A DNA stretch of 64,000 bases, taken from positions 114,407-178,406 of the forward strand of contig NW_005434605.1 of assembly GCF_000315625.1 (NCBI RefSeq), given 5' to 3'. This stretch comes from Guillardia theta CCMP2712. Lineage: Eukaryota; Protista; Cryptophyta. Shown here piece after piece: positions 2,471 to 35,500 of the stretch. The notes under the pieces were generated by a model. The model searched no databases and was not told the origin of the DNA. It saw only the letters and a list, made by a program, of their open reading frames with translations. The position numbers and the translations under genes are program-made. Each line of letters opens with the position of its first letter. Within the stretch, counting starts at the first letter, position 1.

Positions 2471-3818
2471 TCATGTTGCTGTCCTCTCGCCCATGAGTAG
2501 AAGTTGCTTCTCTCTCATGAGCAAAGACTGAATTTTCGTGTTCCATTCCTATTGTGACGTCACAAACACCTAACAACATGCCGTTAACCTCAGGAGACAG
2601 CGGGCTGGAGCCTGGGCTGTTCACGACGGCAACATCCCTGCACCGAACAAGGTCAGTCTAAACTTCACGGAGCATTTTCGATCGACTTGTTGTCGAAACA
2701 ATCATCCACAAGAGCCTGGACATCAAGTTTGGTAAGTCATCGCTAAGGGAAGGCCATCGGGACACACTTGCTTCAAGGTCAGGGCAGCCGCCAAGTCACT
2801 TGTCTGCGACAGGATCAGAGACAGACTGTTGTCATGGCTCCCAACCTCTCCATCTGCGATGTCTCCCGGAAGCAACTCTAACGACTGGTATTCCATCTCA
2901 TCAAACATCTCCTGCACGATTGTTTCATCTCCAACAAGCTTGTGCCTTCGATTGGACCTCATTCATTCCACCGAAGGGACCCTTCAAGTAGCAATGAAAT
3001 TTAGCCCGGATGATCGAAGTCTGTATCGACAGATCTCTGCCTGCCTCACAGACAATCTCCTCCCCTTGCCGTATGGCGTCCAAGGCGCCAAAGAAGTTCA
3101 AGACCCTACAATCACGAATGTCACATCACGTCCTCCCAGGACTCCAAGATGGGCACCAGAACAAAATATTTGCGTCCAACTTGGGTAGTTTGGAAAGCTT
3201 TCGTTTAGCTCCAAGAGCACTCAGGAAGACCAGTTTCCTCAATCTTGAACCGCAACCATTCACCACATTTCGAACCATCTTCACGTTGACATCCTGCGGG
3301 CTCTTGCCGAGAACCCAGTCCAGCGAGGGAAAACAAGACGTGTATTCCGAGATGACGATGAGCTCTGAGCTCTGAAGAACAGTATCGAGATTGACCAGAC
3401 GATTGTCTCCAGTGGATGTAACTTGAAGTACTTTCAACTCGTTTCGAGTTTGCGCAAGGTTACCTACGAAACACCTTGCCGCGGGATTACCCGCATGACA
3501 AACTGCATCAGAATACTTATCAAAGCAGAGATTGACAGAGAGATTTTGCTCCTTCAGAAGTTCAGCTGCCAACCTTTTGCCCACTGACGTAGAGGCTCCG
3601 ATGACGGTGACTGTCTCCTTCATGATTGGGCTGCTACATCGCGCTGGTTGCAAGGGGATCCTTTGGAGAGGAAGAGGACGGTAAGGAATGAAGGCACTCA
3701 AAGCAGCATGGTATGTTGAGGAGGTAGAGGAGGAGGTAACAGATCGCTCAGCCGCCATCACTGTCGCACACATGAGCAACATGCGGCTGCTGGTCAACCA
3801 TGGAGCTTGCCCGAGCAT
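2471..3818 (-). CDS. NAD(P)-binding Rossmann-fold protein (NmrA/atypical SDR-like), probably plastid-targeted; multi-exon
   Basis: The leader carries ...AALSAFIP..., resembling the AF motif of complex-plastid presequences. It is followed by VTVIGASTSVGKRLA (degenerate glycine-rich loop), KLVFLSALG and spliced WVLNFFGALDAIRQGEE. The last exon EWNTKIQSLL...TAT* ends at 2471. The 3' exons were assembled by eye. Confidence 0.65.
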
Positions 3819-3857
3819 GTCCGATTCCTCTAAATGAGAAAAAGATGAATTGAAATC

Positions 3858-3875
3858 TTTACTCAAAGTTAAGTT
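3858..3875 (-). promoter_or_regulatory. Recurring intergenic element AACTTAACTTTGAGTAAA
   Basis: Exact 18-nt match to the copies at 13392-13409 and 62938-62955. It lies 40 nt upstream of the ATG at 3818 and next to a CCGG island. Confidence 0.55.
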
Positions 3876-4006
3876 CAATCGGGGGCGGGCGGGCCCGGGG
3901 CCGGGCCCAAAAGTCACCGGGCAAGGCCCTGTCCCCGGCTCTATCCTCGGATGAACTTGACTATTCCCAACTTTGCGTAAAGGGTGGAATTCCCAGCTAG
4001 ACTAGT

Positions 4007-7000
4007 TCAGGTCAAACTAAGTTTACTCAGAATGTTCTCTGCCTCCTCCTTTGATCCAACATGTGTGAAATCTCGTAACTGCTCTAATGCGTTGCTCCTT
4101 TTCAGCCGTTCCTCCAGAACTTCAGCTGCCTTGGTGTCTCCCACGTCACGCAAGAAGCTGAGGTACGTCTCGATCGTCGCGGCATGGTGCGGGTTCATGC
4201 TGAGGATATACTGGTACACAACCTCTGCACCCTCCGGCTGCTTCGTGGCATGAAGGTGATGGCCGAGCTCAAGCCAGAGGCTGATGTTGCGCGGGTGACG
4301 TTGGATGGCCCTGATGAGAACTTGTCGGGTCTGATCTGCAGACAACCGTGACAGCTTCTGACTGTTTGACAGCCTCAGGCTCTTCTTCTCCTCCTCCTGC
4401 GCTGCCCGGCGGCTCCGTCGCTCCCTCCTTCGCCAGGCTTCATCTTCTTCTGGATCCGATGCTCTTGTCCCCCGCATGAACATCACCGGCTGGATCGACT
4501 CGAAGGAGTGCAGAGCCTCGGTGCTCGCCTGAGAGCTCCGCACGGGCCTTGTCAGACTGTTGTGAAGGCTGCTCTGAGAACTGACCTCTGCCCCCTCCAG
4601 CTGCTGAACATTCGTTCCGTCCATCGCTCCATCCCGCTGGTCGGCACAGGCTGGAGCAGGAGAAGGCTCGCGTGCAAGAGAAGGTCGCTCGTCTGTTCTT
4701 GATGGGGCTCGATCTCGTTGTTGGAGGAAGCCCAAGGTAGCCTGAGCAGACGCATGCTGCTTGTCCTGACCGTCGGACACCCACTTCATGACCTTGCTCT
4801 CTAGCTGAGACGAGTCGCTCTGGCCAGCTGACTTGGTTGTCTCCCGAGGCTCCATGGGTTCTGACTTGGTTGTCGCCCGAGGCTCCATGGGTTCGAGGAG
4901 CGAAGGCCGTCGTGCTCGTATGCTAACGGCTGAAGAAGTTCTCCTGAGGAGCGCGCCTGAAGAAGGCTTGTCCCTCCGCGCTAGGTTCTTCCAGGAGTCG
5001 AAACAGCGGGAAAGACCCTGATTGATCCACCTCGCGAGGATCCGCATGCGGTACCTCTGATCTGCTGCTAGAAACCTCCTCACTCGCAGCGAGTTCCTCT
5101 TCCAGGTCAAGTAGACAGTCTCCAGCTTGTCGTACGACAACTTCGACGTGACCAGCCCTTTCCCTGTCTTTGCGGGTTTGGCCGTGACCTCCTTGAGGTT
5201 GATTATCAAAACGGCGATCAGGAGGTTGTAGATGACAAACTGAGATAAGAAGATGAAAGCTGGAGTGTACAGCATCGCCCACATGCTCCCGCAGTTGGAC
5301 CTGCAGGGCGTCTCGAAGCTGGGATCCTCCCCGACGCTGCAGTCCACCAACCTCAAGCTCTGCAGGTAGTTGAGCTCATCGGCGGAGGTGCAGCCGGGGA
5401 GGAAGGAGCGGGCTATGAGCAGATAGTGATCTCTGTCCACCTCCGAGCTCGACTGGTTCCATCGCTGTAGCACTAGAGCTGCCTGATCGAGCGACCCAGG
5501 AGTTCGAGGAAAGTCGCTGTGCATGATGTTGGCATGGTCCATCAGGGTCGCCCACCCGTCGCCGCTGAAGATGCGGGTGAGGGTGAGGAAAGCGTCTTCG
5601 AGGGACGAGAAGCATGAGAACTCGCCGAAGACAGCGTCATCCGACGCTAGCAAGCAGCGGACAGCTCGAAGACGGGAGGTGACATCATCAAAGTTTGCCC
5701 TCCGCTGCGACTCGTCGCACATGTCCCCGAACAAGACGAGCCCGATGACGCCGAAGGAGAGGAAGAAGATGACGAGGAGCGAAGAGATGTAGAAGAACGC
5801 GGGGAGAGAAGAGATGAAAGTCTGGAAGATAGTGAGAATCCCCCCCAGGAACCGGAAAGCCTTTATTGCCCGGAGAGTTTTGAAGATCTTGAAGATCCGG
5901 ACCATGCGGATGACGGTGGGGTCTATGAGAATGATGCCGTTGAACGTGATCTCTGAGAACGATCCCACCACGACCACGAAGTCGAGGATGAGCCAGTAGT
6001 CTTGGAAGAACTTCCTCGGCCGCATCACGAACATCCGAATCAGCGTCTCGATGGTGAACACGAAAGTGAAGAAGAGGTTTGTCCTCGACGTCAGAACGTC
6101 TTGAAAGCTAGACTGCTTGTAAGTCTCGAACCCCATGCAGCAGATGTTGAGAAGGATCATGACGCAGACAAAGACATCGAACGCCATCTTGACGATCATC
6201 CTCTCCAGGAAGAACTTCAATGCTCGCATGGCTGAGTTGCAACCGATGAACAGGTCATGAATGCGAAATCCGTGCTGGTCAACAAAGAGCTGATCCTCAA
6301 GGTTGTGCTGGACGTTATGGGAAGAGGAGGAGGAGGAGGAGGAGGAGGAAGAAGATGATGACGACGATTGTTGAGTATTTTCGTCCTTGATTACCTCCAG
6401 GTTGATCTCATGGAGATGAATCTTGGCGTTGTTGTTCAACTGGTCGAAGACAGAAGCAAGCTGAGAGTCGTCGGCCGAGGTCAAGTACACGTCGTACTTC
6501 TTCTTGTGCTGATATGACAAGTCCGAGCCCACAACGCCACCTCCAGCAGAGCGCGAAGTCGAGCTGGGAACGACTGACCGGACCAGAACAACGAAAGGGG
6601 ACATGTTGTGGGTCCTCTGACCCTCCATGGCCTCGAACTCCCGGAAGTGGATCAAGTCAATGTCGGCGCTATGAAGGAAGATGATGTGGCTGACCAGCAG
6701 TGCCTCCTGCTCCTGCTCCAGCAGGAAGACGAGGGACGCCCAGGTTACCGCGGTTCTCAGCTTCCACTTCCCTTCCTCAGGCGTGAAGGCAGCCACCCTT
6801 CCGACCTCTTGGAGGCGGGACGATGAGCTCGAGATGTTGGAAGTTTGCATCTTTTCAACGAGCGACTTGACGTCTTGGAAGCTCTTAACATTCCTGCACA
6901 TCCAAACCCACTGCTGCAGAGTCCTATCATACGCCTCCTTCTCGCGGTCGTCGTCGGGTGGCAGAGCTGGTAGTTGACTCCTGGATGGCTTGTTGTTCAT

Positions 7001-10000
7001 CTCCACACTCTGCCAGAGTGCCTTCCTCCCTTCTTCGTCCTCCTCCGAGAACTTGGAGCGCAAGAGAGCAAGCTCGTACGCGTTGATCAGGATGGCGGTG
7101 AAGATGGGCATGACGAGATACTTGCCCATCAAGACGATGACAACCTGCAGAGAAGCGTCAGAGAAGATGAGATGAAGGAGGGAGGGAGGGAGAGAGGGAG
7201 AGAGGGAGGGAGGGAGGGAGGGAGGGAGGGAGGGAGGGAGGGAGGGAGGGAGGGAGGGCTCACGAAGAAAAGAGCGTTGGCAGGGTTCTTGTCTCTGTAC
7301 GGCCCTGTGCTGTAGCCGGTCTTGTCAATCCCCGCAAACATGTGGTTGTACCAGTTAGACCCGGTCGAGATCGTCACCACAGACACCAGCGACTGTCCGA
7401 TCCAGTCGAAACTCGTCGGTAGTCTCCTCCATACTCGCTCTTCCCCCGCTGCATCTGCTCCCTTGCAATCTTGCTCGGCGAATACTTGGTTGTCGCTGCA
7501 CGAGTTGAGCTGACCCATGAAGAGCTGAAGGCCGAGGAGCGAGAAAATGAAGGAGAGGAGCCCAGAGAGGAAGATGGCGGCTGCGATGCTCTTGTAGCTC
7601 GTGAAGATCGTGTCGATCATCCTCTTCAGCCCTCTCACCTTGGCGACGAACCTCAGGGGGCGCATGGCCTTGGTGACCCTGAGCAACCGCAGGGCAGGGG
7701 AGTTGGAGGAGGAGGAGGAGGAGGAGAGATAGGAGAGGATCTTGAAGCTCTCCTCGACCATGGAGGCGGCAACGACGAGGAAGTCGAGACGGTTGTAGGA
7801 GACCTTGATGTACTCAACGAAGTTCATCCCGAGGACCTTGAGCACGAACTCGAGGATGAAGACGAAGTTGAGCATCGAGGTGAACGTGTTGAGGGTGACA
7901 GCCTCCGCCTTTGTCATGTTCGGGCGGTCAAGGAGGATGCAGACGCAGGAGAGGAGGACACAGAAGATCAGAAACTTCTCCACCTTGGGGTTGAACACGA
8001 TCCTGCAAGACAGGATGCGGACAGGATGGAGAGGAGGGAGGAGCCCGAGGGAGTAGCCCGTCTGATAGCCATATTTGAGCCCCTCCTTCCTTGCGTATAC
8101 CTCCTCTTTGAGCCTCTTCAGCGGCAGGATGCTGATCCTGTAATAAGCTCTGTTCTTTTCATCCTTCTCCTCATCCTCCTCCAGCATTCTGATCTTCCTC
8201 GCTATCCCATCCTCCACGATCTGCAGAGTGTTTGACACGTGTATCCCCAACTCCCTGCTCCCCATCCCCTCCCTGATGAACATCTCCTGCTCCGTCTCCT
8301 TCATCTTCGCCAGCGCACGGCGGATCGAGTTGACGTCGTCTTGGCCCTCCCCCTCGTACCTCCTCTTCGCCTCTCTCGCGCTCTTACTCACGAGTAGCAG
8401 GTCGTGCGCCCGCTGCTCCTGCCTCCTCCTGTTCTCCTCGATAGTATGCTGGAGGATCATCCTGGACTCCTGAAAGAGTTTCCACTGGGAAGCATCTTCC
8501 CTCCTCCTCGTTGTCCGTTTCAGCCTGAGGAAGAAGTCAGGGCGGCGGGAGCGAAAGGAGGCAAGAGCAAGGGACGAGGGAGGAGAGCGGTTCACCCTTT
8601 CAGCTTGTTCTGCAGCTGGTTCAGCTCTTCCATTCTCTTGCTCATCAACTTCTTTCTATGCTCTCTCTTCATGTACTTCACCCGAAACTCATTCAGAATC
8701 TTTTCCTTCTCCTTCTTCAGCTGCTCCTCCCCTTCCTGCAGAGAGATCAATCGGGAAAAATGAGAAGCTTAGGCGTCCTACTCTTGTTTCTTGCTCCTCC
8801 CATCCCCCAACCCCTCGTTCTCTCCTATTCCTACTCTTCATGCAGCCCCCGCCCTATGTCCCCTGGCCGCAGTCCCCCTCTTCTCTCCCCCTTCTCCTTC
8901 CCTTCCTACTCATCCCCCTCTCTTCCTACTCATCCCCCTCCTCGTACCCTCCTCCAACGCGTCTGCCCTCCAGCTCCTCCCCTTTCCTCTCGTCCTTCTT
9001 GTCCTCTCCCAATCTTCCACCCCTCCTTCTCGCTCCCTGTCCTTCCTGTCCTCCCTGCCCTTCCCGCTACTGTATCCTTTGCTTCACACCTCGCTGAATC
9101 CGATGATGACGATGGTGATGGCGATGGAGCCGAGAAGGTACTTGCCGAGGAAGATGGCGAAGAAGAAGAAGAAGGAGGAGGACTGCAAGCTTGATGCGCG
9201 GACGGCGACAGAGTAGATGGAGGTCCATCCCTCCACCAGGAAGATCTGGACGGAAGACAGCATGCTGTTCCACAGCACTGCAAAGTTGCTTCGGGGGAGC
9301 ACCGAGACTATCTGGGGACGGTCGGTAATCGGGTTCGAACTCGCGAGGTCCGTGCGGAGGACAGGCGCACTTCCCTTCCTGCTGAAGGTCGACCAGACCT
9401 CGACGACCCAGGGGTTTCTCAGCTTGTCAAATGTGACATTGACAACCACGGCTGGGAGCCCGACGACTTGCTGAAAGGTCTCCGTTCGCGAGCTGAGCCA
9501 GACCTTGGCCCCCATGAACAAGTTCGCCTTCTCTTCCGCGGCCTCCTGCATGGTGGAGCCGAAGAGCGCCTGGCCCAGGAGGGCGAACATGAGACAGAAG
9601 AGGAAGTAGATAGCAAAGACGTTGGCGATGGAGAGGACCAACTTGACCAGGATCCGGATCTGCTCCTGGATGATGCGCAGGTTGCGAAAGACGCGGACCA
9701 GTCGCAGCAGGCGCAGAGCTCGGAGGGAGGTGATGCCCGAGCCGCTGCCCTCGCACGCCACCATGCTCGAGGCCGCGCGCATGCAGCGAACGCTGGAGAG
9801 GATGACTTCGATCTCAGCAGAGGAGATAACAACCAAGGTCAAGTCAAAGAGGTTCATGGGGTCCGAGAAGTAGAGTCGCGGCCCCAGCCCGACGAGCTTC
9901 ACGAAGAGCTCCCACAGAAAGACTGCGATGAAGGCGATGTTGGCGTACTGCACCCACAAATGAAACGTGAGGTGTTTCTGATCTCCTTCCTCCCCAGCTC

Positions 10001-13000
10001 CCCACAGCTGCCCCACCATGCTCTGCCTCGCGTGCTCCATGGCCATGCTGACGGTGTTGAGCGAGACTACAGTCGTCACGATGAGCTCGAGGGCCTGCGA
10101 GCGAGCGAACGCGGCCCAGAGGTCAACGCAGAGCCAAAAGAACTTGGCAACCCTCCGGATGGACTTGAGCAGGAGGGTGAGAGCCTGGGCCTTGCTGTCC
10201 GACGAGACGCGGAGGTTCCAGTAGGGAAAGAAGCGCTTTCCATCCCCGTCGATCTCGAAGCGGAACATCGGGTCGACCGGAGGAGGAGGAGGAGGTGCGA
10301 GGTCGATCGCCGGCACGTGAGTTTCCATCCGCTTCATCTTCCTGAGCTGCGCGAACTCGAGCGAACATCTCACCATCGCGTTGTCGTCGGCGAACTTTGA
10401 GATGAGCTGGTCCCAGTGAAAGAAAGCCTTGAGCATGCCCGGCTTGGAAAAGTGAAGGATCACCCGCCGCTGCAGCCACTTCATCTTCGCCGCTCCGTTC
10501 TGCCGCCATCTGGACTGCATGTGAGCCTTGATCCTGATGGTGTGATACTGCGTCCAGTGCCGCCAAGTGTTGAACATCTTGGCAACTACCACATGCTTCC
10601 AGTGCGCTATGACCCAGGACGCCAGGCGCTGCAGCTTCTTCCTCTTCACCCGCTGGAACTGTCGGGAGAGGACGGCGAGGAAAATGTTCATCAAGAAGAT
10701 GGGGAAGGTGAAGAGTTGGATGATGAAGAAGACGGCAGCAGCAGGGTTCGAAGTCTGCATGAAGAGATACATCTGCGAATTCCAGTCTACGTCTGCAAAC
10801 AAAGGAGAGAGGAAAGGCGAGAGGGGAAGACGGGGGATGATAGTTGGAGAGATAAGGTGGGACAAGACAGGAGGACAACCAGAGGAGAAAACAAGTGGAC
10901 GGAGAGAGAGACAGGAGAGGAGAAAGAAGAGAACGAGGATGGAGAAAGTGAACGAACAAGGAGTGGAGGAAAAGCATCAGGGACCCATCGCAACAGAACA
11001 ACAAGTCGTTACTTGTTATGCTCCTTGCTACCAGAAGGAGAGCGGATCCGATCCCATCGGGGTGTGAATAATCCGGGTTTTCTCCGCTAGGAACGCACTG
11101 GTAACCAGGAGGGCAGTCTCCGTCTGCACGACAGAACGACTGCAGGTCAATGGCACTGCTGCTGGTGACGCTGGACAAGAGCTTGCCGCTGGTCGTGCTG
11201 AAGCATCGGAGCTGAAGGCACCCCCCGAAGAGCTGGACAAGGCAGATGGCGAAGACGATGGTGACGGCGAAGATGAGGAAGAGGGCGCTGAAAATCTTGT
11301 CGGAGGAGCTTGAGAGAGTTACCATGATCGTCTGCCAGGTGACGTCAGCGATGGGTCAGGTGCAAGAAGAAAAAAGGTCAACGTGGCTGACCTTCATCTC
11401 CGGGAGCCTCCGTATGCCTCGGAGGACTCTGAGGGCTCGGAGTGTACGAAGACTTTTGAGATTGTTGGCAGCTAAGGACGAAGTGATCTCAACGATACCC
11501 AGGACGCCCAGGATCAGGTCAAGGACGTTGAGTGAGTTTCTCAGGTATGAGGTGCTGTGCATGATGAAGCCGAAGGCAATGATGTTGAGAACAACATCAA
11601 GAGCGAAGAAGATTGAGACAACGATGGTGGAGATTGAGGACAAGACTGAGGTGGAGGTGGCCGTGTTGTTCAAGTCTGGAACATCCAGCGGGTCGTCGAT
11701 GACGGTGATTGCGATTGAGAGCAGGACGAAAAGGATGAGAACGGCCCTGTACTCTCTCCTCTCGATGATCCAGATGCATGACAGGCGGATCACGTTTTTG
11801 ATGTTCATTCCTGCAAGCAACACGTCAGCAATCATCTCATCCCCTCCTTGTCTATTCTCTCACCAAGGACGCCATGAGTGGCGTACACGTTTGGGTCAGG
11901 CCAGGGCTGGGAGCAAGTTCAGCTCTCACTTTCACCGCCGCATCTCGTTACCTCCAGCTCGACATGGTCATTCACTTCAGCTGCCTGCCAACCTCTCATG
12001 AGACGCACGGAATAATGGCCGTCAGATGTGATCGCGTGGCTCCCAGCTCGCCGCGGTATCAACCGCATACAAGTCTCCGCCCAGAAGCTCCTCGCCCGCC
12101 AGAACCCCAGCACGACGTACGTCCCGATGGGACTGCAGGAAGTCAGCACGTCAGGCAGGTGGGAACAATGTACTCACCCTCGCACTTTGGCGAGCTGCAG
12201 CTCAGCAGCCTGTCCTTGAACTTCCTCCTCGTTGATCGACACCAAGACGTCTCCTACTTGCACCCGTCGACTCTTCCAAGCTGAGCTGGACCTCAGCACA
12301 GCCGCAACACGGAGCTCCATGACTCCGGACAAGCTAATGGTACTGGTGCATGCAGTCATGCGAGGCGGCGAGCGCCCACAGTCATACACACCTCCTAAGG
12401 ACGAACGACTGGAAGATGATTCCGACGTCTCCCACCTCCACTTGCGGGTCGTCGATCTCGAACTCTTTGAAGGTTTGGGAGTCGAAGTCAAACCTGAAGG
12501 ACTTCGCTGCTCTCTCCACTGTTTCCCTCACCGACGGATCGACCTTCTGATGGGCCTGCTCCACGTTAGGACCCCACCCCTTACACCGCACGATTTCTCA
12601 CCAGGTACTGATGGGAGAGACTCAACTTGGCTGCGTGTATCGATTGTTTATATTTAGGATCGATCAGGGACGGTAGGCCAGGTCGATACACAATCGCTGA
12701 GTTGCCCGGCAGGTTTGAAGGGAGAGCTTGAACGATTGAGGGGTTTGAGAGCGCGTGACCCTCTTCTTGGAGCAGAGGAGACGCATCAGTCTTCTCCTTC
12801 TCTTCCTTGTTCGTCTTTGGTCTTGAAGGATCCTCCAAAGACCCAGCGGTCCATGAAACAACTGGGTAGAACCCAAAGGGCCTGGCCCGGGGGTTGTCAT
12901 TCCTGGGGCCATACGTCCTCTTGTGACTGGTACGAAGATACTCGTCACCAGCCTCAAAGGACTTCTCTGAGATCGCCAGACCCGACAGGGGAGTGAAGGC

Positions 13001-13069
13001 GGCTGCTGGGCGGGTGCCGAACCGCTCATTCAATTCCTGCTTTGACTTGCGGGAGTTCGCCGAGTGCAT
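4007..13069 (-). CDS. Four-domain voltage-gated cation channel alpha subunit (Cav/Nav-like) with N-terminal PDZ and C-terminal TPR; multi-exon, 5' end uncertain (may reach ~13300)
   Basis: Four S4 segments: KSLRTLRALRVLRGIRR, SLRALRLLRLVRVFR, ALRLLRVTKAMRPLR and IRMVRIFKIFKTLRAIK. Four pore loops and S6 segments (e.g. FLMNIFLAVL, VIYNLLIAVL). Exons link through GT-AG introns such as 10793-11012 and the (GGGA)n intron near 7146-7261. Confidence 0.9.
4828..4893 (-). repeat. 33-bp coding tandem duplication (EPMEPRATTKS / EPMEPRETTKS) in the channel C-terminal tail
   Basis: Two adjacent 33-nt units with one mismatch. Confidence 0.9.
7176..7258 (+). repeat. (GGGA)n microsatellite in a channel intron
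   Basis: Directly visible. Confidence 0.95.
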
Positions 13070-13619: not shown

Positions 13620-16438
13620 TCATAATCGTTCATTGAAAAACGACAGCGCCTCCTTCACTTCCCCCACCCTCAGCGTCAAGGTCCCTCGGTCTGACGCCCA
13701 TCTCCCCCCCAGCCTCTCCTCCCTTCCTCCCTCCTCCTCCTCTACGCATGCCCCTGACAACAAAGTGTCGTAGTGGCAGAAGCGAAACCTTCCAAACTCC
13801 ACCATCGGGTACCGAAAGCGTCGTAACGCGCTTTCAAGCAGATGCCAGCGCAGATACGACACGCTCAGCGCAGCCGGAGCTTCCATCACATCCGACCAAC
13901 CGGCGACGCCCTCTCCTTCTAGTTGCCTCGAGTACACAAGCTTCACGATGCCTTGCTTCAGCCTCCCCCCTGACTCATCGGCCGCAAGCCTTGTCCGCAG
14001 GTACTCGAGGTGCTCTCCTGTGAGCGCTTCCCCGTACAGCAAGTAGCACACCTCCCGCCGCTCTCGCTCGAGGTCATCGAACACCATGATACTCAACTCT
14101 CGATGCAGGCTCATCCGAGCTCGATAGTCCGCTTCCACGTCCTGCGAGAGCAGAGAAAAGTGACAAGAGCGTGACCGATAGCAGTCATTGCTCGGAGAAA
14201 GAATCAGAGCCGTTCCTTCCGCATCCTCGCACATCGAAAACATGAACCGCTCATGGCTCTCCCCCAGAAAACAAACCCCCGGAATGCTGCCATCAAGTAA
14301 GGGTTCGTCGCAAACGAGGTTGATTGCAGAATGCATCTCAGCACTCTTGTGGGACAGCAGACATTGAGGCTGATCCACCATCAGCGAGCAAGGCGGAATG
14401 GAGTGGAAGACGTGATACGAGCTTCTCGGTAACAGGACCACGTCCCCCTCAGCCTGTCGCATGCAAGTTGAGACTGCCGCATCCACGCTCCCATACACAC
14501 TGTCGACGTACGAGTTGTCTGATGTCATGTTCCCTACCACTGACGCCACGTAAAACTTGTACATACTTGAGAATTCAGACCGACGATACCAATCTTCCTC
14601 GCAGACTGGGGCAATCGGAGCGTGCTGCTTCGGATTGTGAGGAAATCGAGTCTGTCGATCGACATCTGAGCCCCAGAAAGCGTCCTGCGTCACAACAAGT
14701 CCGTCAAGACAGTCACGCTAGCATAGCACCCTTCCCCCCTCACCTGAAAGAAACCTGGTCTCCTCAGCAGGTACGCCTCCAGGTGCCCCCGCTCGATCAA
14801 CATCGGCAACATGTTGTCCACAGCAGCAAACACGGGCTTGCACAGGTGCAGGACCTTCCTCGCCCCCTGAGCAGTGAACACTATCGCTCCTGTACATCGA
14901 GGCCGATGTGCCCGGCTGATGTGAGCGAGCCCTGGCTCCGAGCAGTGTGAGCTGCATTTCTCGAAGCAGTACTCCAGGTACAGCAGGTCTGCCGAGGCCG
15001 GGAGCTCCTCCAGCGCTCTTTTGATCCGCAAGTTGAGAGACGGGAGGTAGTCATGCACCATCAGGTCGTCCTCGAACACTCCGATCAGCTCTGCCCCGCT
15101 TGATAGACCTTCTTCCAACACCCGGAGGTTGTCCATCGCCCGAGCGATGTACGGCTTCAGCGCACCATGCATCGTCCATGGCGTGATCGACATGAGCTCC
15201 ACCCCCTCCCGCGTTACCCACCCAGAGCTGATCAACGCTTCTACATCGATCTCCTCTTTGAGGGTGAGTGCCGGAAAGCTCACATTCCTGAAGCCTGCTG
15301 CCTTCAGCAAGCCTTCCATGTGTCGTCGCTTTTGTTCTTTCCCAGGAAGGCTCAACACAAACACCTTCATGTCGAACGCATGCTCCACCTGGTCGAAAGA
15401 GAAGTCTCCTCTCAAGTACCTGTTCGTGTTGATCATCGCATCTTCCGTGTATTGCAGCATGTCCGGAAAGGTCGGGCTTTCACATTCGTAGTCGTCATCT
15501 CGGCAAGTGTCGTCCAGCTCACACTTACACGCCATGTCCTGACAGAACAGCTTCACCTTGGGCGAGAGCGATCCTTCCCAGCCCTCCCCCTCAGGCTCCC
15601 CCCCTTCAATGCACACTTCCCTCATCATCTCCTCCACATGCGACGTCTCGTCTGCGTCCTCGTCTGGCAACGCATACGTACAACTCAAAACGACCCTCAG
15701 CTCGTAGCAGCCAGGCCTTGGCTTGATCTTATGTCGATCGATGATCTCTCCTCTCAACAGCTGCTCTGTCAACTCCCATCCGTTCTCTCTTGTATCTCTC
15801 GCTGCTTCTAACCGCGCATCCCCAAACCAAATCTCAACCGAGTAGAATGCTACCACATGCTCACTGCTCCCGAGCTCAGCGCTGTAACCGACCGTGAGCT
15901 CTACTTCTCCTTGATCTGAGGGCACAAGATGGCTGTCTGGCGCTGGCAGCTTGAGGCTGAGCTTAGCCCCATACACCACTTCCATCTCATGCCACACCAC
16001 CAGCCTCCCGCCCGATACTGAAGCTCTCGCCTCGTGCTCCAGGTATGTACCGAACCACAAGTGCCCTTGCGTGAGATTGATTGCATTCATCTTGCACGCG
16101 TACGCTCCATCGCCTGACCGCTCGCAGTGCCTGCACATGTCGTGAGCATTGCTCGCAGGGCTCCCGGCCCCCTGCACTGCATCCTCCATGCTAGGTTCCC
16201 GGCTTGTCGTGTACAGGCGATACACCCAACCCTCACAATGAGGCTCATCGTCTGAGCTCAGGTGGAGACGAAACGGAACCTCAGCAGAGGTGACCGATCT
16301 CTTCAAGACGAGAAGATGCGAAGGCCAGCGAACATCTATGACTGGAGCTCTGCTGCCATCTGTTGAAAGCGCGGAGGCGAGGACAACAAACGAGCACAGC
16401 GCGATGTTGAAGAAGATGGTTCTGACTACAGCCAGCAT
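13620..16438 (-). CDS. Glycosyltransferase family 25-like protein, copy B (complete, ~919 aa, signal peptide; intron 14685-14743)
   Basis: Hydrophobic N-terminus MLAVVRTIFFNIALCSFVVLASA, with the same GT25 motifs and intron as copy A. Confidence 0.82.
13631..15950 (-). repeat. Right arm of the long inverted repeat (partner 1-2317)
   Basis: Reverse-complement near-identity to 1-2317. Confidence 0.97.
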
Positions 16439-30360: not shown

Positions 30361-30669
30361 GATGGAAAGTGTCCGATAAAATATGAGATCACACAGACGA
30401 TCAGAGAGATTTTCTCCCTCTCAGTGTCAGATTGTTTAGGTAGATAGGGGAAGGGCGAACTACAGGCACCCACTCCGCCTTCTTTCTCCTCGGAACAAGA
30501 GTGCAATACAAGAAAGCTCCTGGACAAGAGAGACGGTCCGAGAAGAGATATTCTCTTTTCTCCTTGGAACTGCGATTCTTTTGATGGTTCTTGACCTCTT
30601 CTCCTCCTTCTTTTTCTAACTTCTCTTCCTTGTCTTACGCTTTCATCTGCATTCCGCGCCGCTGCTGCT

Positions 30670-31085
30670 TGACCACCCACCCCCTATTTGTCTCCGTCAT
30701 ACACCCTCACCCTGTCCAAACCAAAAGACTACCCTACCCGACAGGTATGTTGGTCCCACCACACCCCAACTTTGCATACCCACCCCCTCGAACAAATCTC
30801 TTCAAGGTCTTGTCCTACCAGAGTTTCACACCCCCTACCTACCTTTTAAGGTATACCCCTTTCTAAATCCTCCATACCCCACCCCTACCGGATCTACTCG
30901 AATTCACTACCCTTCCCATTTGGCAAATATTGGCACCCCCCCGGTCTGTCTTTGACCCCACTTTGACCAAAGACTACCCCTCCAGATGTCATCAAACACT
31001 TATGATTTCGATACACCCCTCAATTACCCCACCCTATCATCGAACACATCTGGTGTACCCCCACCCCCTGGATTGCGACCTCCTT
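30670..31085 (-). other. Strand-skewed ACCC-rich (GGGT on minus strand) non-tandem intergenic tract
   Basis: Dense ACCC/ACCCC words with no credible ORF. Upstream of the 14-3-3 gene. Confidence 0.7.
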
Positions 31086-31897
31086 CCGAAAAATGAAGAA
31101 GATAAAAATGATTCGAGCGGAATCATCGAGAAGAAAACGAGAGGAAATGCTGAGGAAAAGAGATGAACAGGTCAACGTGAGAAAGGGTCAGGGAGAGGAA
31201 GATCGAGAGCTAGAGTTTCAAGAGGGGGAGACAGGAAGCTATGAGTGAAATTGACAGAAAAGTTTTTTTCAGGCAGGCTGCAGGATGTTGGTAATGGCAA
31301 CAGTCGAAAGGGGGTTGAAGGAGAGAAAGACAGAAAACGAAATCGAATAAATGAAAATGAGAGGGTGAGATGCGAACATGACAAGAGAACATACAGGAAT
31401 TCTGCAGGACAGGATACGACAGGTACGAAGAGAGGAATCCGGCAATAATAATCGAGAAAAGAAATAGTGAGGAGGACAGCAAGGGAACATGAAGAGAGTG
31501 AAGGCATGATTCTCATCGATATAGCAGAAGCGAGTCAGTTACTTGTGAGGAGGAATGATCTAGAACCGTTAAAATCGATCAAACATCTGTACAGCGAACA
31601 ACCGTCGCAATACATTCTGGTGCTGCCTTTCCCCATACGACGAACCTGCTGCTCAGCATCACACAATGACATTTTGCTCCATGCATGGAAACAACGGTCA
31701 CTGATAGAAACAACTGGCCAGTGACTGTTGTCAACACCTTGCCTGAGCATCTCGTCACTTTATTTGTTTTGCTTGCTTGTGCTGCTGAATCAGAGTGAAG
31801 GCAGACAACGTGTGCTGAAGTTGAGAGCTTACTCTCGCATACGTCTCCCTGAATGTTCATTTACCTCTTACAATGACCCTTTCATTGTGTTCCAGAA

Positions 31898-32030
31898 CAT
31901 CTAGTTGAACAATGTTGTATTCGAGCGAGCTACTTGAACATCGCATTTACTCAAAATTAAGTTTTGAACCATGTTGTATTCTAGAAGATCTACTTGAACC
32001 ATGTTGCATGATAGCAGATCTAGTTGACTA
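31898..32030 (+). repeat. Degenerate ~30-bp minisatellite (ATCTASTTGAACCATGTTGTATT...) containing a variant of the AACTTAAC element
   Basis: About four degenerate units. 31946-31963 is the reverse complement of AACTTAATTTTGAGTAAA, one mismatch from the recurring element. Confidence 0.75.
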
Positions 32031-32521
32031 CTCTCCAATAAAAGCTGCTCGCTCACGTCGCTCGGCCGGGCCGAATTCCGATGATTCTTAAAATAGTTCG
32101 TACTCACCGTTGAACACCCAGGCGGGTGCCGCATCTTGTGCCAGGCCTCCGAGGCTCGGCGCCATCGCCTGTCACATACCTGCTTGGGGCCCTTGATGCC
32201 CCATAGCCCTGCCCACAGCAAGCAGGCGCGCATAGCCCTGGCAGCGCATCTGCAGCGCAATGATAGCCAGCAGCTACTGCGGCCAGCAGTGCGGCCCGGC
32301 CCAGAGTGCCTGCCAGAGTGCGCTGCAGAGCTGGCTGCAGAGTGCGGTCAGGCTGCCAGCCGGGGTTGGCCCGCCGACAAGTTCCGACTTGAGTGGGCGG
32401 CCAGTCATGTCAAATTGAACGGCGATGGAGCTGGACCGAGGGGCTGGTAGGGGGAGGGAGGAGAGAGGAAGGAAGCAGCAGGATCGAGCAGAGGATTGGG
32501 TTAGGACGTGCTGAACCCTTG

Positions 32522-35500
32522 ATGTTGCAACGGAGCAAGTCATTGAACGTGAATCCAACCAGCTTGCTGCATGTCGAGAAGGACCAGATTCTCGAGTTCA
32601 AGGTCTGTGAAGTATGTTGATGACTGCGGGTGACGGTCGGAGGCAGGCGCTGTTGAGGACATGCCTCTGCGAGCTCGAGGCCGACCTGAAGAGGCTCGTC
32701 GAAGCAGGCACAAGTGACAAGGGTTTCTTGGGACTGACTCTCACAGGAACCAAAGTCACTACAGTAATCTCCGGATCCCCGGCCGCTCAACCTGTGACGG
32801 GAAGTCCTCTCCGACCAGGAGACGACCTCTTGAGAGTCAATGGCGTCTCTTTCAAGGCCGAGAGGAGCTCAGCGATGATCTCCAAGGCCGTCAGGAATTC
32901 TTTAGACGACAACCATGGCACGCTGCGCATAGAGTGCAGAAGAAAAAGTTCCCTCACCGTGGATACCGTCGTCTGCTGCCTAGCTGCTTCTAGCTCCCCG
33001 CTCTCTTCTGCCTGCCATGCGCTCACTGCCGCTGTGTTGGAGACGATGAACCCCTCAAATGCGAACAGAGCCCCTGCTCCAGCAGTCGCCGAGCAGATCC
33101 AGCAGCTGGCCAAGCACCTCCTGTCCTTGTCGACATCTCATGAGGAGGAGATCCGCCGGACCATCGACAAGTCGACTTCTTGCCTGGCTCACCTCCTCGA
33201 GCTGGTGGAGGACTTCGAGCTCAAGGCATGCAAACCAGCGCTGGTGAGCCATCATCGTGTGTTGTTCGTTTGCTCCACAGTGCTTCCTTGACACCAGACC
33301 TTGCAGAAGTGTAACGGCAAAGATGAGGATCATGACGGCCCAGCGTCGGAGGAGGTACTGAGCTTGCTCAAGTGCGTGTGAGTTGTTGCTGATCGAGATG
33401 GGAAGCAGGAGAATGCGGGGGAGAGCGCAAAGGCGATGCGAGAGAGTCAAGCGCTTGTCAAGGAGCTGCAGGAGAGGCTGAAAGTCTCGGAGATGAAGCT
33501 CAAGGAGATGAAGCAGTCGAACGAAAGCAAGTTGAAGAAGGAACAGCTGAGGCTTGAGCAGCTCAAGATGGAGTTGCAAAGGGAGTTTGATGAGAAGCTA
33601 ATGAACAGACTCCGTGAGGACGAGGAAGCGTTAGAGCGATGCAAGCAGGAGTACATGTGCAAGGTCCGCGATGATCTTTCAGAGCTGAGTCGTCGGAACA
33701 AGTCCGGTCTGCAGGAATTGAATCAGAAGGCACAGGAGCTTGAGGGTTGCATCAGGAATTTCAGCATCGACGTACAATCCTCTGTACGTTCAGCGAATCA
33801 AGAACTGGACATTGTGCGTTGTCAAGTGCGAGAGAGTATGAAGACAAAGTCTTGGTATCTAAAGCAATGGACCTCAAGTTTGAAGACAAGTAAACATATT
33901 TCTTCAATGCTATTGAGGTCTCGACACAAGGTTTGTTTGGCTTCCTTCCTCAAATGGAGAGGTGCGTGTACATACATCAAGACCGTGCTTGACATGGCAA
34001 ATTTCGTGGGTAGCAACATGATTGGGCTATCAAGAATGCAGCAAGATATTCTTGTCTACCTCTTCTGTGATTTGAATCGTGCCCAATCTTTGAAAAGGAG
34101 AACTTTCAGCGTTGAGGAGATTCTCAGGCGATGGAAAGATTTGATAAGAAGGACAAGTTATGTTGACAAGCTGGACGTCATCTTTCGTAGGAACATCTCC
34201 CGCCGCATTCTTGACATGTGGACTAGAGGACGGATGCTGAGATCAGACCACAGGCTTCGCGTCAAGATATCAAAGAAGTTGTGTCGTACCGGTCACCTGC
34301 GGATCAGCAACATGCTCTTCGCTGCTTGGTCTCGATTTGTCAAGATGGCCTCTTTCTTTTTTCACAAGACATCTCAAAGGATCTGCCAGAAGTTTTTCAA
34401 GTCCTGGAGCTCTCTGACAAGGATGAAAGTCAAATTGTTTTCCAACACAAACGTCAAGATGTTGAAGAGATGCTTCATGTCAAGTTACAGCTTCTTCCAG
34501 AGGTGGAAGTTGATTTTCTCGCTGAAAGGAAAGAAGAGCTTGTCGTTGAAGTTGAAAGAGAAAACGAGCTTGAAGAAACTACAAAGTATGATGTTGCAGT
34601 GGGCAAAGAGGGTAAGGACAATGACAGCTTGCAAAGCTCTTGCAAATTCAAGAGAGATGAGATTCACAAGTTTGTGCCTGCGGAGCTGGTCGAAAACCAG
34701 CAACACGGAGAGTAGGAGGAAGTTGAGTTGGATGCGATCACAAGCAAGACTGAGTGATCAGGTTTGCAAGAAGGTCATCTTTGCCTGGAAGGTCGACATG
34801 TTTGTGAGGAAGAAAGATGAAAAGCACATCATATTCTTGCTCTCTCGCAGACAATGTTGGTTGTTGAAACAAACTCTGCGCAGATGGGCGAGATACTGTG
34901 AGATGATGACTGAAGTGTACAGCAAGATCACGGTGAAGTCAGAGATGGGCATTTCTTTCTCTCTGTCTTGTTTCCTCTCCTGGAGATTCTTCACCCTCCA
35001 ACAGCGCAGCGTTTCATTCAAACTCCGGCAGATAGACAGGGTCAAATCGTTGAAGGCATTTCACACTGTTTTTGACCGATGGAGGATTTGTTGTTTCTCA
35101 TCGAGAATGGCCTTGAGGCACATGAAGGCATTCTTTACACTCTGGAAAATTTTCTTCAGGTCACGAGCAAGAACGAACGATTTCCTTGCTTTCATCTCCT
35201 CGCAGAGCAGGCAGAATTTCCTGCACAATGTGCTCATTTGTTGGAGATGGTTTGCAGATCATGGAAACAAGGGCGAAGACGTGTGTTGTGCGATGATGAG
35301 ACGACAGTCGAAGCTATCAATCATGCAGTCATTCAGCAGATGGAAGAAGGCGGCTCTTGTGGTATCATACCATCTGTCTGAGATGAACATCAACAAAACG
35401 AACCACCAGACAATCAAGAAATGTTTCTCCCTCTGGTCGGAAGAGATCGCCAGAAAGAAGCACAACCTTCGTATCTTTCAACACCAGAGGCAGAGGCAGG

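Follow-up and report, generated by a model that had tools for sequence, protein, structure and literature searches.

In four-domain channels, EEEE or EEDD filter rings confer high-affinity Ca2+ binding, and the loss of a single Glu from EEEE strongly reduces Ca2+ affinity. A Lys in the ring, as in DEKA or EEKE, confers Na+ preference, and non-conducting Cav1.1 variants act in excitation-contraction coupling. To our knowledge, no channel of this family with a hydrophobic Val at its constriction has been characterised. In the HFS/HFS+1 framework (Spafford, PMC10120453), a Gly at the HFS+1 position of DII is tied to Ca2+ selectivity if the ring is acidic. Pozdnyakov, Matantseva & Skarlato (2018, Sci Rep 8:3539; PMC5824947) have analysed the filter motifs of all 277 sequences in their survey and found a great variety in protists; they also describe the AID for Cav-beta as exclusive to the HVA Cav clade.

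The gene described here lies in the window, i.e. the whole stretch of 64,000 nucleotides of Guillardia theta DNA that was analysed. It is Guillt10 (XP_005827163.1) of the 2018 survey, because its S4, pre-IQ and IQ strings match Tables S2 and S3 of that paper exactly: the DI, DIII and DIV S4 strings are contained in the open frames of the window, and pre-IQ TLGFLQQRDRA and IQ IQPVMFMRGTR also have exact matches there. Besides these tabulated S4 and IQ motifs, Table S3 gives the Guillt10 inactivation gate as 'Not identified' and its docking site as T/Q/Y, while the survey's text treats Lys-, Arg- or His-containing filters only, leaving the Guillt10 ring confined to a figure. Neither the survey's text nor these tables mention the long loop of DIV, the PDZ-like N-terminus and TPR-like C-terminus of Guillt10, or its orthologues presented here. 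A literature search on the accession and on Guillardia channel work gave nothing further than this survey. Being annotated in RefSeq and included in a published survey that reports wide filter diversity in protists, the gene is not a discovery. What is added here is that an intron-free orthologue proves the DI splice, that neutral DI and DIII residues are conserved and the DI +1 Asp is not, and that there is a conserved accessory architecture.

Gene structure and the DI splice junction

The minus strand of the window (on which all features below lie) carries an intact multi-exon channel gene with four Pfam Ion_trans repeats at about 12597-4007. This approximate span (4007..12597) is given by stop-free stretches and Pfam matches, and an intron-free orthologous locus from a marine metagenome (L001) is colinear with it over 12561-3995. 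The stop codon is a TGA at 4009-4007; the 5′ end is not fixed, an ATG near 13067 being a possible start. The gene is single-copy in the Guillardia theta genome, its nearest paralogue reaching 32% identity in DIV. Single exons or single open frames served as queries in our searches, and the four repeats were read piece by piece. The five coding pieces, DI to DIV in order, gave Ion_trans E-values of 1e-16, 2e-7, 1.5e-40, 9e-35 and 5e-36, low enough that chance is not an issue for the channel assignment. These exon pieces lie on the same strand, are colinear with the single orthologous locus, and hold four tandem six-transmembrane repeats in one gene.

The first piece is an exon with DI S1-S4 (11392..11859; E 1.1e-16 before rounding), inside which lies DI S4 (11407-11457, seven Lys/Arg). 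It is followed, at the transition from DI S4 to the S4-S5 linker, by a 60-nt GT..AG intron with an in-frame TGA (11332..11391), a site that L001 crosses uninterrupted (LSELK-TFVV versus LPEMK-TIMV in Guillardia). The next exon (11013..11331; E 2e-7) encodes S5 and the upstream half of the pore loop of DI. Beyond the DI pore-loop intron (10793..11012), an exon at 9090..10792 (3′ end approximate; E 1.5e-40) encodes DI S6 (10665-10727), the I-II linker and the entire DII, with its S4 at 9675-9725 and its S6 at 9096-9161. One or more exons at 7264..8655 (5′ end approximate; E 9e-35) cover the last part of the II-III linker, then DIII from S1 to the pore loop, with S4 at 7639-7692. A 119-nt GT..AG intron with CCCT repeats (7145..7263) separates the DIII pore loop from DIII S6. 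The last exon (4010..7144; E 4.7e-36 before rounding), a single 1105-codon open frame colinear with P0001-P0004, then comprises DIII S6 (7076-7144), a III-IV linker of ~300 aa with a poly-Ser run at 6320-6367, DIV with its S4 (5852-5911) and S6 (5195-5257), and a C-terminal tail of ~380 aa.

The DI filter is split by a CT-rich GT..AG intron of 220 nt (GTAACG...TTTGCAG). The upstream exon terminates in ...ARSIT plus the first base of an Asn codon at 11013, and the downstream exon begins with the rest of that codon, followed by V-D-W-N-S-Q; after splicing, the filter codons at 10782..10792 thus comprise the last two Asn bases, Val, Asp (+1) and Trp. When L001 was aligned across this junction, its residues 562 and 564 were found to flank the intron. 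Since exactly one residue lies between the exons in L001, the splice model (SIT-N-V-D-W, intron 11012-10793) put forward by an earlier, sequence-only reading of this DNA is supported, and the junction is fixed by the alignment. A micro-exon within 10793-11012 was rejected, as L001 allows just one bridging residue; so were an alternative donor (CTG|GTAGCA), which gives an immediate stop once spliced, and an alternative acceptor six bases downstream, which would shorten the invariant T-x-x-x-W spacing by two residues.

It could be argued that drift produced the odd ring in a gene that is in decay or silent, or that the DI reading is the artefact of a wrong splice model. RNA data indeed gave no support for expression: a raw RNA run (X7) has 2 reads across 6 kb and no joints, and two contigs labelled 'RNA?' (X1, X2) also lack joints and are unspliced through the 60-nt intron, so that they may be DNA. 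In addition, a DNA contig, from a run that bears a different organism code, carries a one-base deletion at 11221 in the DI exon; its depth there, however, is 2.9, which is error-prone. Against decay, all exons are open, including the 1105-codon frame, and the S4 segments are intact, with 6-9 Arg/Lys in each of the four repeats, mostly at every third position; the earlier impression of strongly charged sensors in a gene that does not look decayed is thus borne out. The artefact variant is countered by L001, in which a single residue bridges the DI junction, and by the broken T-x-x-x-W spacing with the downstream acceptor. We therefore regard decay, silence or a splicing artefact as very improbable.

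The pore ring and accessory segments

By translation of the minus strand, the four pore loops read TNVDW (DI), LVEGW (DII, 9225..9239), TGSNW (DIII, 7351..7365) and SGDGW (DIV, 5552..5566), and in every repeat a re-entrant P-loop with the T/S-x-[filter]-x-W signature is present. The pore ring is Val (DI, 10790-10788)/Glu (DII, 9233-9231)/Ser (DIII, 7359-7357)/Asp (DIV, 5560-5558), not four acidic residues; the sequence-only reading had claimed this V/E/S/D ring, and the loops lie exactly where it had placed them. The filter register comes from aligning the loops to solved or canonical Cav channels with HMMER and BLASTP. The DI Val was aligned to the Cav Glu via L001, whose Val (TMVGW) lies opposite the Cav1.3 DI Glu; the DII Glu lies opposite the Cav1.2 filter Glu and the DIII Ser opposite the Cav1.3 DIII Glu. 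By BLASTP to P0006, a Cav-like protein with a canonical EEEE ring, the DIV Asp falls on its DIV Glu. The DIV S5-S6 piece, used on its own as a query against the PDB, returned no match. The +3 positions after the filter are N/T/Y/A, i.e. there is no acidic outer ring, and none of the four P-loops contains a Lys.

In DIV, the pore loop is followed, ahead of S6, by an unusually long loop (~90 aa; 5287..5551) with invariant cysteines (in LPGC, VDC, TPC and CGS), which has no counterpart in the alignment with P0006 and is presumably extracellular. The S6 segments of DII and DIII are without the usual Asn, which might alter gating. In the III-IV linker we found neither a Nav-type inactivation motif nor, by Pfam, a PH domain; L001/P0003, by contrast, have two PH domains (87 bits in L001). 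Both ends of the protein resemble interaction modules. The N-terminal PDZ-like segment (12201..12320) scores 18.5 bits with PF00595, below the cut-off of 23.2, and its counterpart in L001 scores 22.7 bits against the same cut-off. The C-terminal TPR-like repeat (4190..4336) scores 22.5 bits with TPR_19, below the Pfam cut-off of 25, and the homologous segment of L001 (tblastn match 4393-3995) reaches 36.4 bits with TPR_17, above its cut-off of 24.4. The presence of these PDZ-like and TPR-like segments suggests anchoring or regulation by partner proteins, not fast inactivation of the Nav style.

By analogy with the Cav1.1 variants, such modules could also belong to a pore that is nearly or entirely non-conducting, the protein sensing membrane voltage or serving as a scaffold, with signalling through its PDZ-like and TPR-like modules and, in relatives, PH modules. 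The hydrophobic Val at the constriction and the DII and DIII S6 segments lacking Asn would fit this idea, as would the conservation of large cytoplasmic modules (PDZ-like and TPR modules shared by Guillardia and L001, two PH domains in the latter). However, the T-x-x-x-W scaffold of the P-loops, the DII Glu and the DIV Asp are strictly kept in relatives of about 40% identity, suggesting that selection maintains a functional pore, and the residues found in DI (V/V/S) and DIII (S/S/A) all have small side chains that would leave the pathway open. A non-conducting role thus appears improbable, and we assume conduction through the Val-bearing constriction in what follows.

Orthologues and paralogues

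The relatives at hand comprise a Hanusia phi protein (P0012), 82% identical over the DIII exon (7264..8655) with the DIII Ser retained, and metagenomic orthologues that are about 41-46% identical and share the same architecture from the PDZ-like to the TPR end; this shared architecture and these identities further argue against decay. The Hanusia sequence continues into the DIII intron and may be unspliced. L001 has a V/E/A/D ring, and in L016 a Ser in DI and a Glu in DII are readable. With Guillardia counted in, the filter residues are V/V/S in DI and S/S/A in DIII, and GDGW of DIV is invariant in five of five sequences. Neither of the two findings that the sequence-only reading had set against itself, a micro-exon or orthologues with canonical filters, was encountered; the relatives' DI and DIII residues are neutral.

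Guillardia, Hanusia, L001, L015 and L016 thus share neutral DI and DIII residues, a DII Glu and a DIV Asp in a small sample (DI from three loci, DIII from three, DIV from five), together with the Cys-bearing long loop after the DIV filter, the PDZ-like N-terminus and the TPR-like C-terminus. On balance, we favour the view that they form a lineage-specific clade of cryptophytes and unidentified marine eukaryotes. Profiling metagenome contigs with the DIV alignment gave only L014, a short unrelated locus with a canonical E, and an ESM Atlas feature search gave nothing but generic Ion_trans clusters with scores <0.9.

The DI +1 Asp had been proposed to substitute for the missing acidic residue. 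This is not supported, since the two orthologues whose DI loop can be read both have a Gly there (TMVGW in L001, TLSGW in L016). In Guillardia alone, the Asp could contribute a third negative charge. The +1 position also bears on the possibility that Guillt10 is still Ca2+-selective or Ca2+-preferring, its DII Glu, DIV Asp, DI +1 Asp and backbone carbonyls forming a Ca2+ site; it would then be a divergent Cav that admits Ca2+ upon depolarisation, e.g. for flagellar responses or those of the ejectisomes. HVA Cav channels are indeed the nearest in sequence among solved channels, the DII HFS+1 residue is Gly (a sign of Ca2+ selectivity in the scheme of PMC10120453, given an acidic ring), and Guillardia does have the Asp at +1 in DI. 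Yet the ring holds only two carboxylates, when a single Glu loss from EEEE is already costly, the acidic outer ring is absent, and the Gly in L001 and L016 means that the +1 Asp is not part of a conserved mechanism. We consider Ca2+ selectivity rather unlikely.

Non-canonical rings are also found in at least six other channels of the Guillardia theta genome, including E/A/D/D (C25, which is P0005, and C133), E/T/D/D (C52), E/S/D/E (C72), S/E/D/Q (C42) and one with an Arg in DIII (C55). Odd pore rings are thus the rule among the channels of this species. The paralogues differ from Guillt10, with a DIV identity of about 32-36% at most; most have acidic DI and DIII residues and EF-hands in the II-III linker, in contrast to the neutral DI and DIII of Guillt10, and none has a Val in its ring. 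Several do share with Guillt10 a long loop after the DIV filter. The description of an uncharacterised selectivity type is therefore right in that the V/E/S/D ring is non-canonical, and overstated as a discovery, given the 2018 survey and these paralogues.

Predicted permeation and comparison with known channels

From its sequence, Guillt10 is somewhat more probably than otherwise a voltage-gated four-domain cation channel (FVCC) of weak selectivity, belonging to the lineage-specific clade. Depolarisation would move the S4 segments and open a pore with just two carboxylates at the constriction and without an acidic outer ring; Ca2+ would bind far more weakly than in an EEEE or EEDD ring, and there would be no Lys of the kind that gives Nav and NALCN channels their Na+ preference. 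The two-carboxylate ring, the missing outer acidic ring and the missing Lys make a weakly selective voltage-gated cation conductance the most likely outcome, one predicted to be permeable to monovalent ions with some Ca2+ permeation or block.

More tentatively, and with the odds against it, the two-carboxylate ring with its hydrophobic or small residues in DI (V/V/S) and DIII (S/S/A), a disulfide-rich dome following the DIV filter and the PDZ-like, TPR and (in part of the members) PH modules may define an undescribed conserved subfamily with a novel mode of permeation, for example a Val/Ser-lined voltage-gated conductance that is non-selective or passes K+/Na+. If so, the channel could connect channelrhodopsin receptor potentials to cryptophyte motility. 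A natural, evolutionarily maintained channel with two acidic filter residues and a constriction Val is a data point in its own right, and offers a ready-made test of how far the HFS ring sets Ca2+/Na+ selectivity.

Among described systems, the HVA Cav channels (Cav1/Cav2; PDB 7uhf, 5gjv, 8hlp) are the top-scoring solved relatives for DI, DII and DIII. The best PDB matches are L-type Cav channels, with an E-value of 1e-34 for DIII versus only 5e-8 for NALCN, which is absent from the DI and DII structure match lists; by sequence, Guillt10 stands closer to HVA Cav channels than to NALCN. It shares with the HVA channels the four domains, charged S4 segments, T-x-[filter]-x-W P-loops and a cysteine-bearing DI turret, and differs in its V/E/S/D filter (EEEE in HVA, EEDD in LVA channels), a III-IV linker about six times longer, the ~90-aa insertion after the DIV pore loop and the additional PDZ-like and TPR-like modules. 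NALCN and fungal Cch1 likewise have four domains and a ring other than EEEE, and they conduct cations with weak selectivity, as predicted for Guillt10; however, NALCN has a ring Lys (EEKE/EKEE) and reduced S4 charge, whereas Guillt10 has no Lys and fully charged S4 segments. Nav channels have a ring Lys (DEKA/DKEA) and a hydrophobic IFM-type gate in a short III-IV linker; Guillt10, whose linker is long, has neither. The likeness to animal Nav1 (DEKA) lies in an asymmetric ring of two acidic and two non-acidic positions, with a net charge of -2 in Guillt10 and -1 in DEKA, the non-acidic positions being DI and DIII in Guillt10 and DIII and DIV in Nav1.

Gene structure and the DI splice junction

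The channel gene lies on the minus strand and has a multi-exon eukaryotic structure, from about 12597 to 4007 as delimited by stop-free stretches and Pfam matches, and the Pfam matches place four Ion_trans repeats (DI to DIV) in order along it. An S1-S4 exon (11859-11392, Ion_trans E 1.1e-16) and an S5 to P-loop exon (11331-11013, E 2e-7) of DI are followed by a stretch from 10792 to about 9090 (E 1.5e-40) that holds the DI S6 and the complete DII, by DIII (about 8655-7264, E 9e-35) and by a single 1105-codon frame (7144-4010, E 4.7e-36) in which a long linker separates the DIII S6 from DIV and an extended tail follows, all on the minus strand. Each of the four S4 segments carries 6-9 Arg/Lys residues, mostly at every third position, in agreement with the strong charge noticed in the sequence-only reading. 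The usual S6 Asn, read from the open frames, is kept in DI and DIV and substituted in DII and DIII. The genome holds one copy of the gene, the closest paralogue being 32% identical in DIV.

The first two DI exons flank a CT-rich GT..AG intron of 60 nt (11391-11332, minus strand), in frame with both and containing a single TGA that mimics an in-frame stop within DI unless an orthologue is consulted. A 119-nt CT-rich intron (7263-7145, minus strand) is of the same kind as the DI pore-loop intron, and CCCT-type repeats occur in both (7145-7263 and 10793-11012, minus strand); read placement passed over 7168-7266 and 7692-7734 as repeats. Low-depth (3-5x) contigs from a 2011 run filed under another organism code carry one-base deletions relative to the window at 11221, within the DI S5 to P-loop exon, and at 8787, both probably low-depth assembly errors. 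Immediately downstream of the gene, a 291-codon open frame (3129-4001, minus strand) with a Rossmann-like IGASTSVGK motif is possibly an NmrA/SDR-like neighbour; a 292-codon open frame (13623-14498) lies upstream.

At the DI pore loop, the upstream exon terminates with A-R-S-I-T and a single further base at 11013, the intron (11012-10793, 220 bases) starts with GTAACG and ends with TTTGCAG, and the downstream exon supplies the rest of an Asn codon followed by V-D-W-N-S-Q. The SIT-N-V-D-W read earlier is therefore the exact product of canonical GT..AG splicing. An alternative donor yields a stop, and an alternative acceptor six bases downstream disrupts the T-x-x-x-W spacing. The junction can be compared with L001, a 17-kb Tara Oceans contig whose orthologue is colinear with the entire gene and whose DI, from S1 to S6, is one unbroken open frame. 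Its residues up to 562 match the exon ending at 11014 and those from 564 match the exon starting at 10790, so that the split Asn codon accounts for a single residue; the sequence at the site is S-S-V-T-M-V-G-W. Since exactly one residue lies between the flanking exons, the micro-exon that had been considered within 11012-10793 is unnecessary. The single raw RNA run placed 2 reads over 6 kb and reported no splice joints, and possible-RNA contigs cross the 60-nt intron unspliced; beside the colinear orthologue, a silent or mis-modelled gene is nevertheless very improbable.

The filter ring and its conservation

Direct minus-strand translation gives LVEGW at 9225-9239 (DII), TGSNW at 7351-7365 (DIII) and SGDGW at 5552-5566 (DIV), as first read. 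For the register, with the exons searched one at a time, HMMER aligned the L001 DI loop (vtmvgw) with itmegw of Cav1.3, the window's DII loop (flvegw) with itmegw and ltgedw of Cav1.2, and its DIII loop (istgsnw) with vstfegw of Cav1.3 DIII, while BLASTP aligned RIFSGDGW of DIV with RSATGEAW of P0006, a canonical EEEE Cav-like protein. By this register the filter ring is V/E/S/D, which upholds the original assignment. From DI to DIV, position +1 reads D/G/N/G and position +3, in the outer ring, reads N/T/Y/A; an acidic outer ring is therefore absent.

The L001 ring is V/E/A/D. L016, another Tara contig, whose protein P0011 shares 55% identity with L001 in DI, has TLSGW in DI and LLEGW in DII, and the Hanusia phi protein P0012 (EukProt), 82% identical over DIII, retains STGSNW; its sequence continues into the 119-nt intron position and may be an unspliced transcript. 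In DIV, G-D-G-W is invariant in all five sequences. With V, V and S in DI (gene, L001, L016) and S, S and A in DIII (gene, Hanusia phi, L001), the neutral residues are conserved features, and canonical filters were not what these relatives carried. The exact ring is kept in part: L001 preserves V/E and the final D, but has Ala in DIII, and L016 has Ser in DI. The proposal that the DI +1 Asp substitutes for the missing acidic residue finds no support as a family feature, because Gly occupies +1 in both other DI sequences. Altogether, the comparisons show that selection has maintained a four-repeat channel whose voltage sensors are intact and whose ring is V/E/S/D.

Pore loops were also read, against three reference proteins, at seven paralogous loci in the same genome. 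The rings are E/A/D/D in C25 (P0005 itself) and C133, E/T/D/D in C52, E/S/D/E in C72, ?/?/D/D in C33 and S/E/D/Q in G000:C42 (about 204900-208700), where the DIV loop is without Trp. G000:C55 (about 30400-33900) has Arg in DIII and is probably the Arg-containing Guillardia filter of the 2018 survey. From these readings, non-canonical rings are the norm among Guillardia channels, and the V/E/S/D channel is distinguished among them only by its hydrophobic Val and just two carboxylates.

The window's S4 strings match entry 180, Guillt10 of Guillardia theta (XP_005827163.1), in the supplement of PMC5824947, and the pre-IQ (TLGFLQQRDRA...) and IQ (IQPVMFMRGTR) strings listed there lie in the last exon at 4706-4738 and 4463-4495. 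Pozdnyakov et al. 2018 analysed the inactivation gate and the filter, S4 and IQ motifs for all 277 sequences, with the filter letters set out in Fig. 3, the Guillt10 gate given as 'Not identified' and its docking site as T/Q/Y (PMC5824947). A literature search for XP_005827163.1 found the accession named in no other paper. The original observation stands and its interpretation holds in part, but not the novelty of an 'uncharacterised selectivity type': both the gene and the phenomenon in general have been published before, and novelty is low.

Accessory segments

A PDZ-like segment upstream of DI (12201-12320, minus strand) scores 18.5 bits here and 22.7 bits in L001, both below the Pfam cut-off of 23.2 bits. 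A TPR-like repeat near the C-terminus (4190-4336, minus strand) scores 22.5 bits, also below cut-off, and the L001 C-terminal TPR_17 scores 36.4 bits, above it; both segments are conserved in position in L001. The tail also contains a tandem 11-aa repeat (EPMEPRaTTKS x2; 4829-4894, minus strand). The PDZ-like and TPR-like segments would suit a non-conducting sensor or scaffold, which we consider quite unlikely beside the conserved pore loops.

Between the DIV filter and S6, an insertion of ~90 residues (5287-5551, minus strand), also present in L001, has invariant Cys in LPGC, VDC, TPC and CGS in 5/5 DIV sequences and may form a disulfide-bonded extracellular cap. Paralogues P0005 and P0008 have similar long loops after the DIV filter. 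The III-IV linker, the site of the inactivation gate in Nav channels, has a run of 16 Ser codons (6320-6367, minus strand). In L001 (6616-10224) and in the metagenomic orthologues P0001-P0004, Pfam recognises a clear pair of PH domains within this linker (87 bits); it finds none in the Guillardia linker.

Predicted pore properties and comparison with known channels

High-affinity Ca2+ sites arise from EEEE/EEDD rings, and Na+ preference from Lys. Judged from superfamily knowledge and the HFS/HFS+1 framework (PMC10120453), the pore would most likely discriminate weakly among cations and bind Ca2+ with low affinity, since it has two carboxylates and lacks both Lys and an acidic outer ring. Those two carboxylates could still leave it Ca2+-preferring, an unlikely outcome, though the least so of the alternatives to a weakly discriminating pore. 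Opening would be controlled by depolarisation, and inactivation, if present, would differ from the hinged-lid mode of Nav channels.

The gene lacks the acidic ring that defines Cav channels, the Lys and IFM gate that define Nav, and the Lys and weak S4 that define NALCN. It nevertheless has the features by which the four-domain superfamily is defined, and its closest solved relatives by sequence are the L-type Cav channels, NALCN being far more distant.
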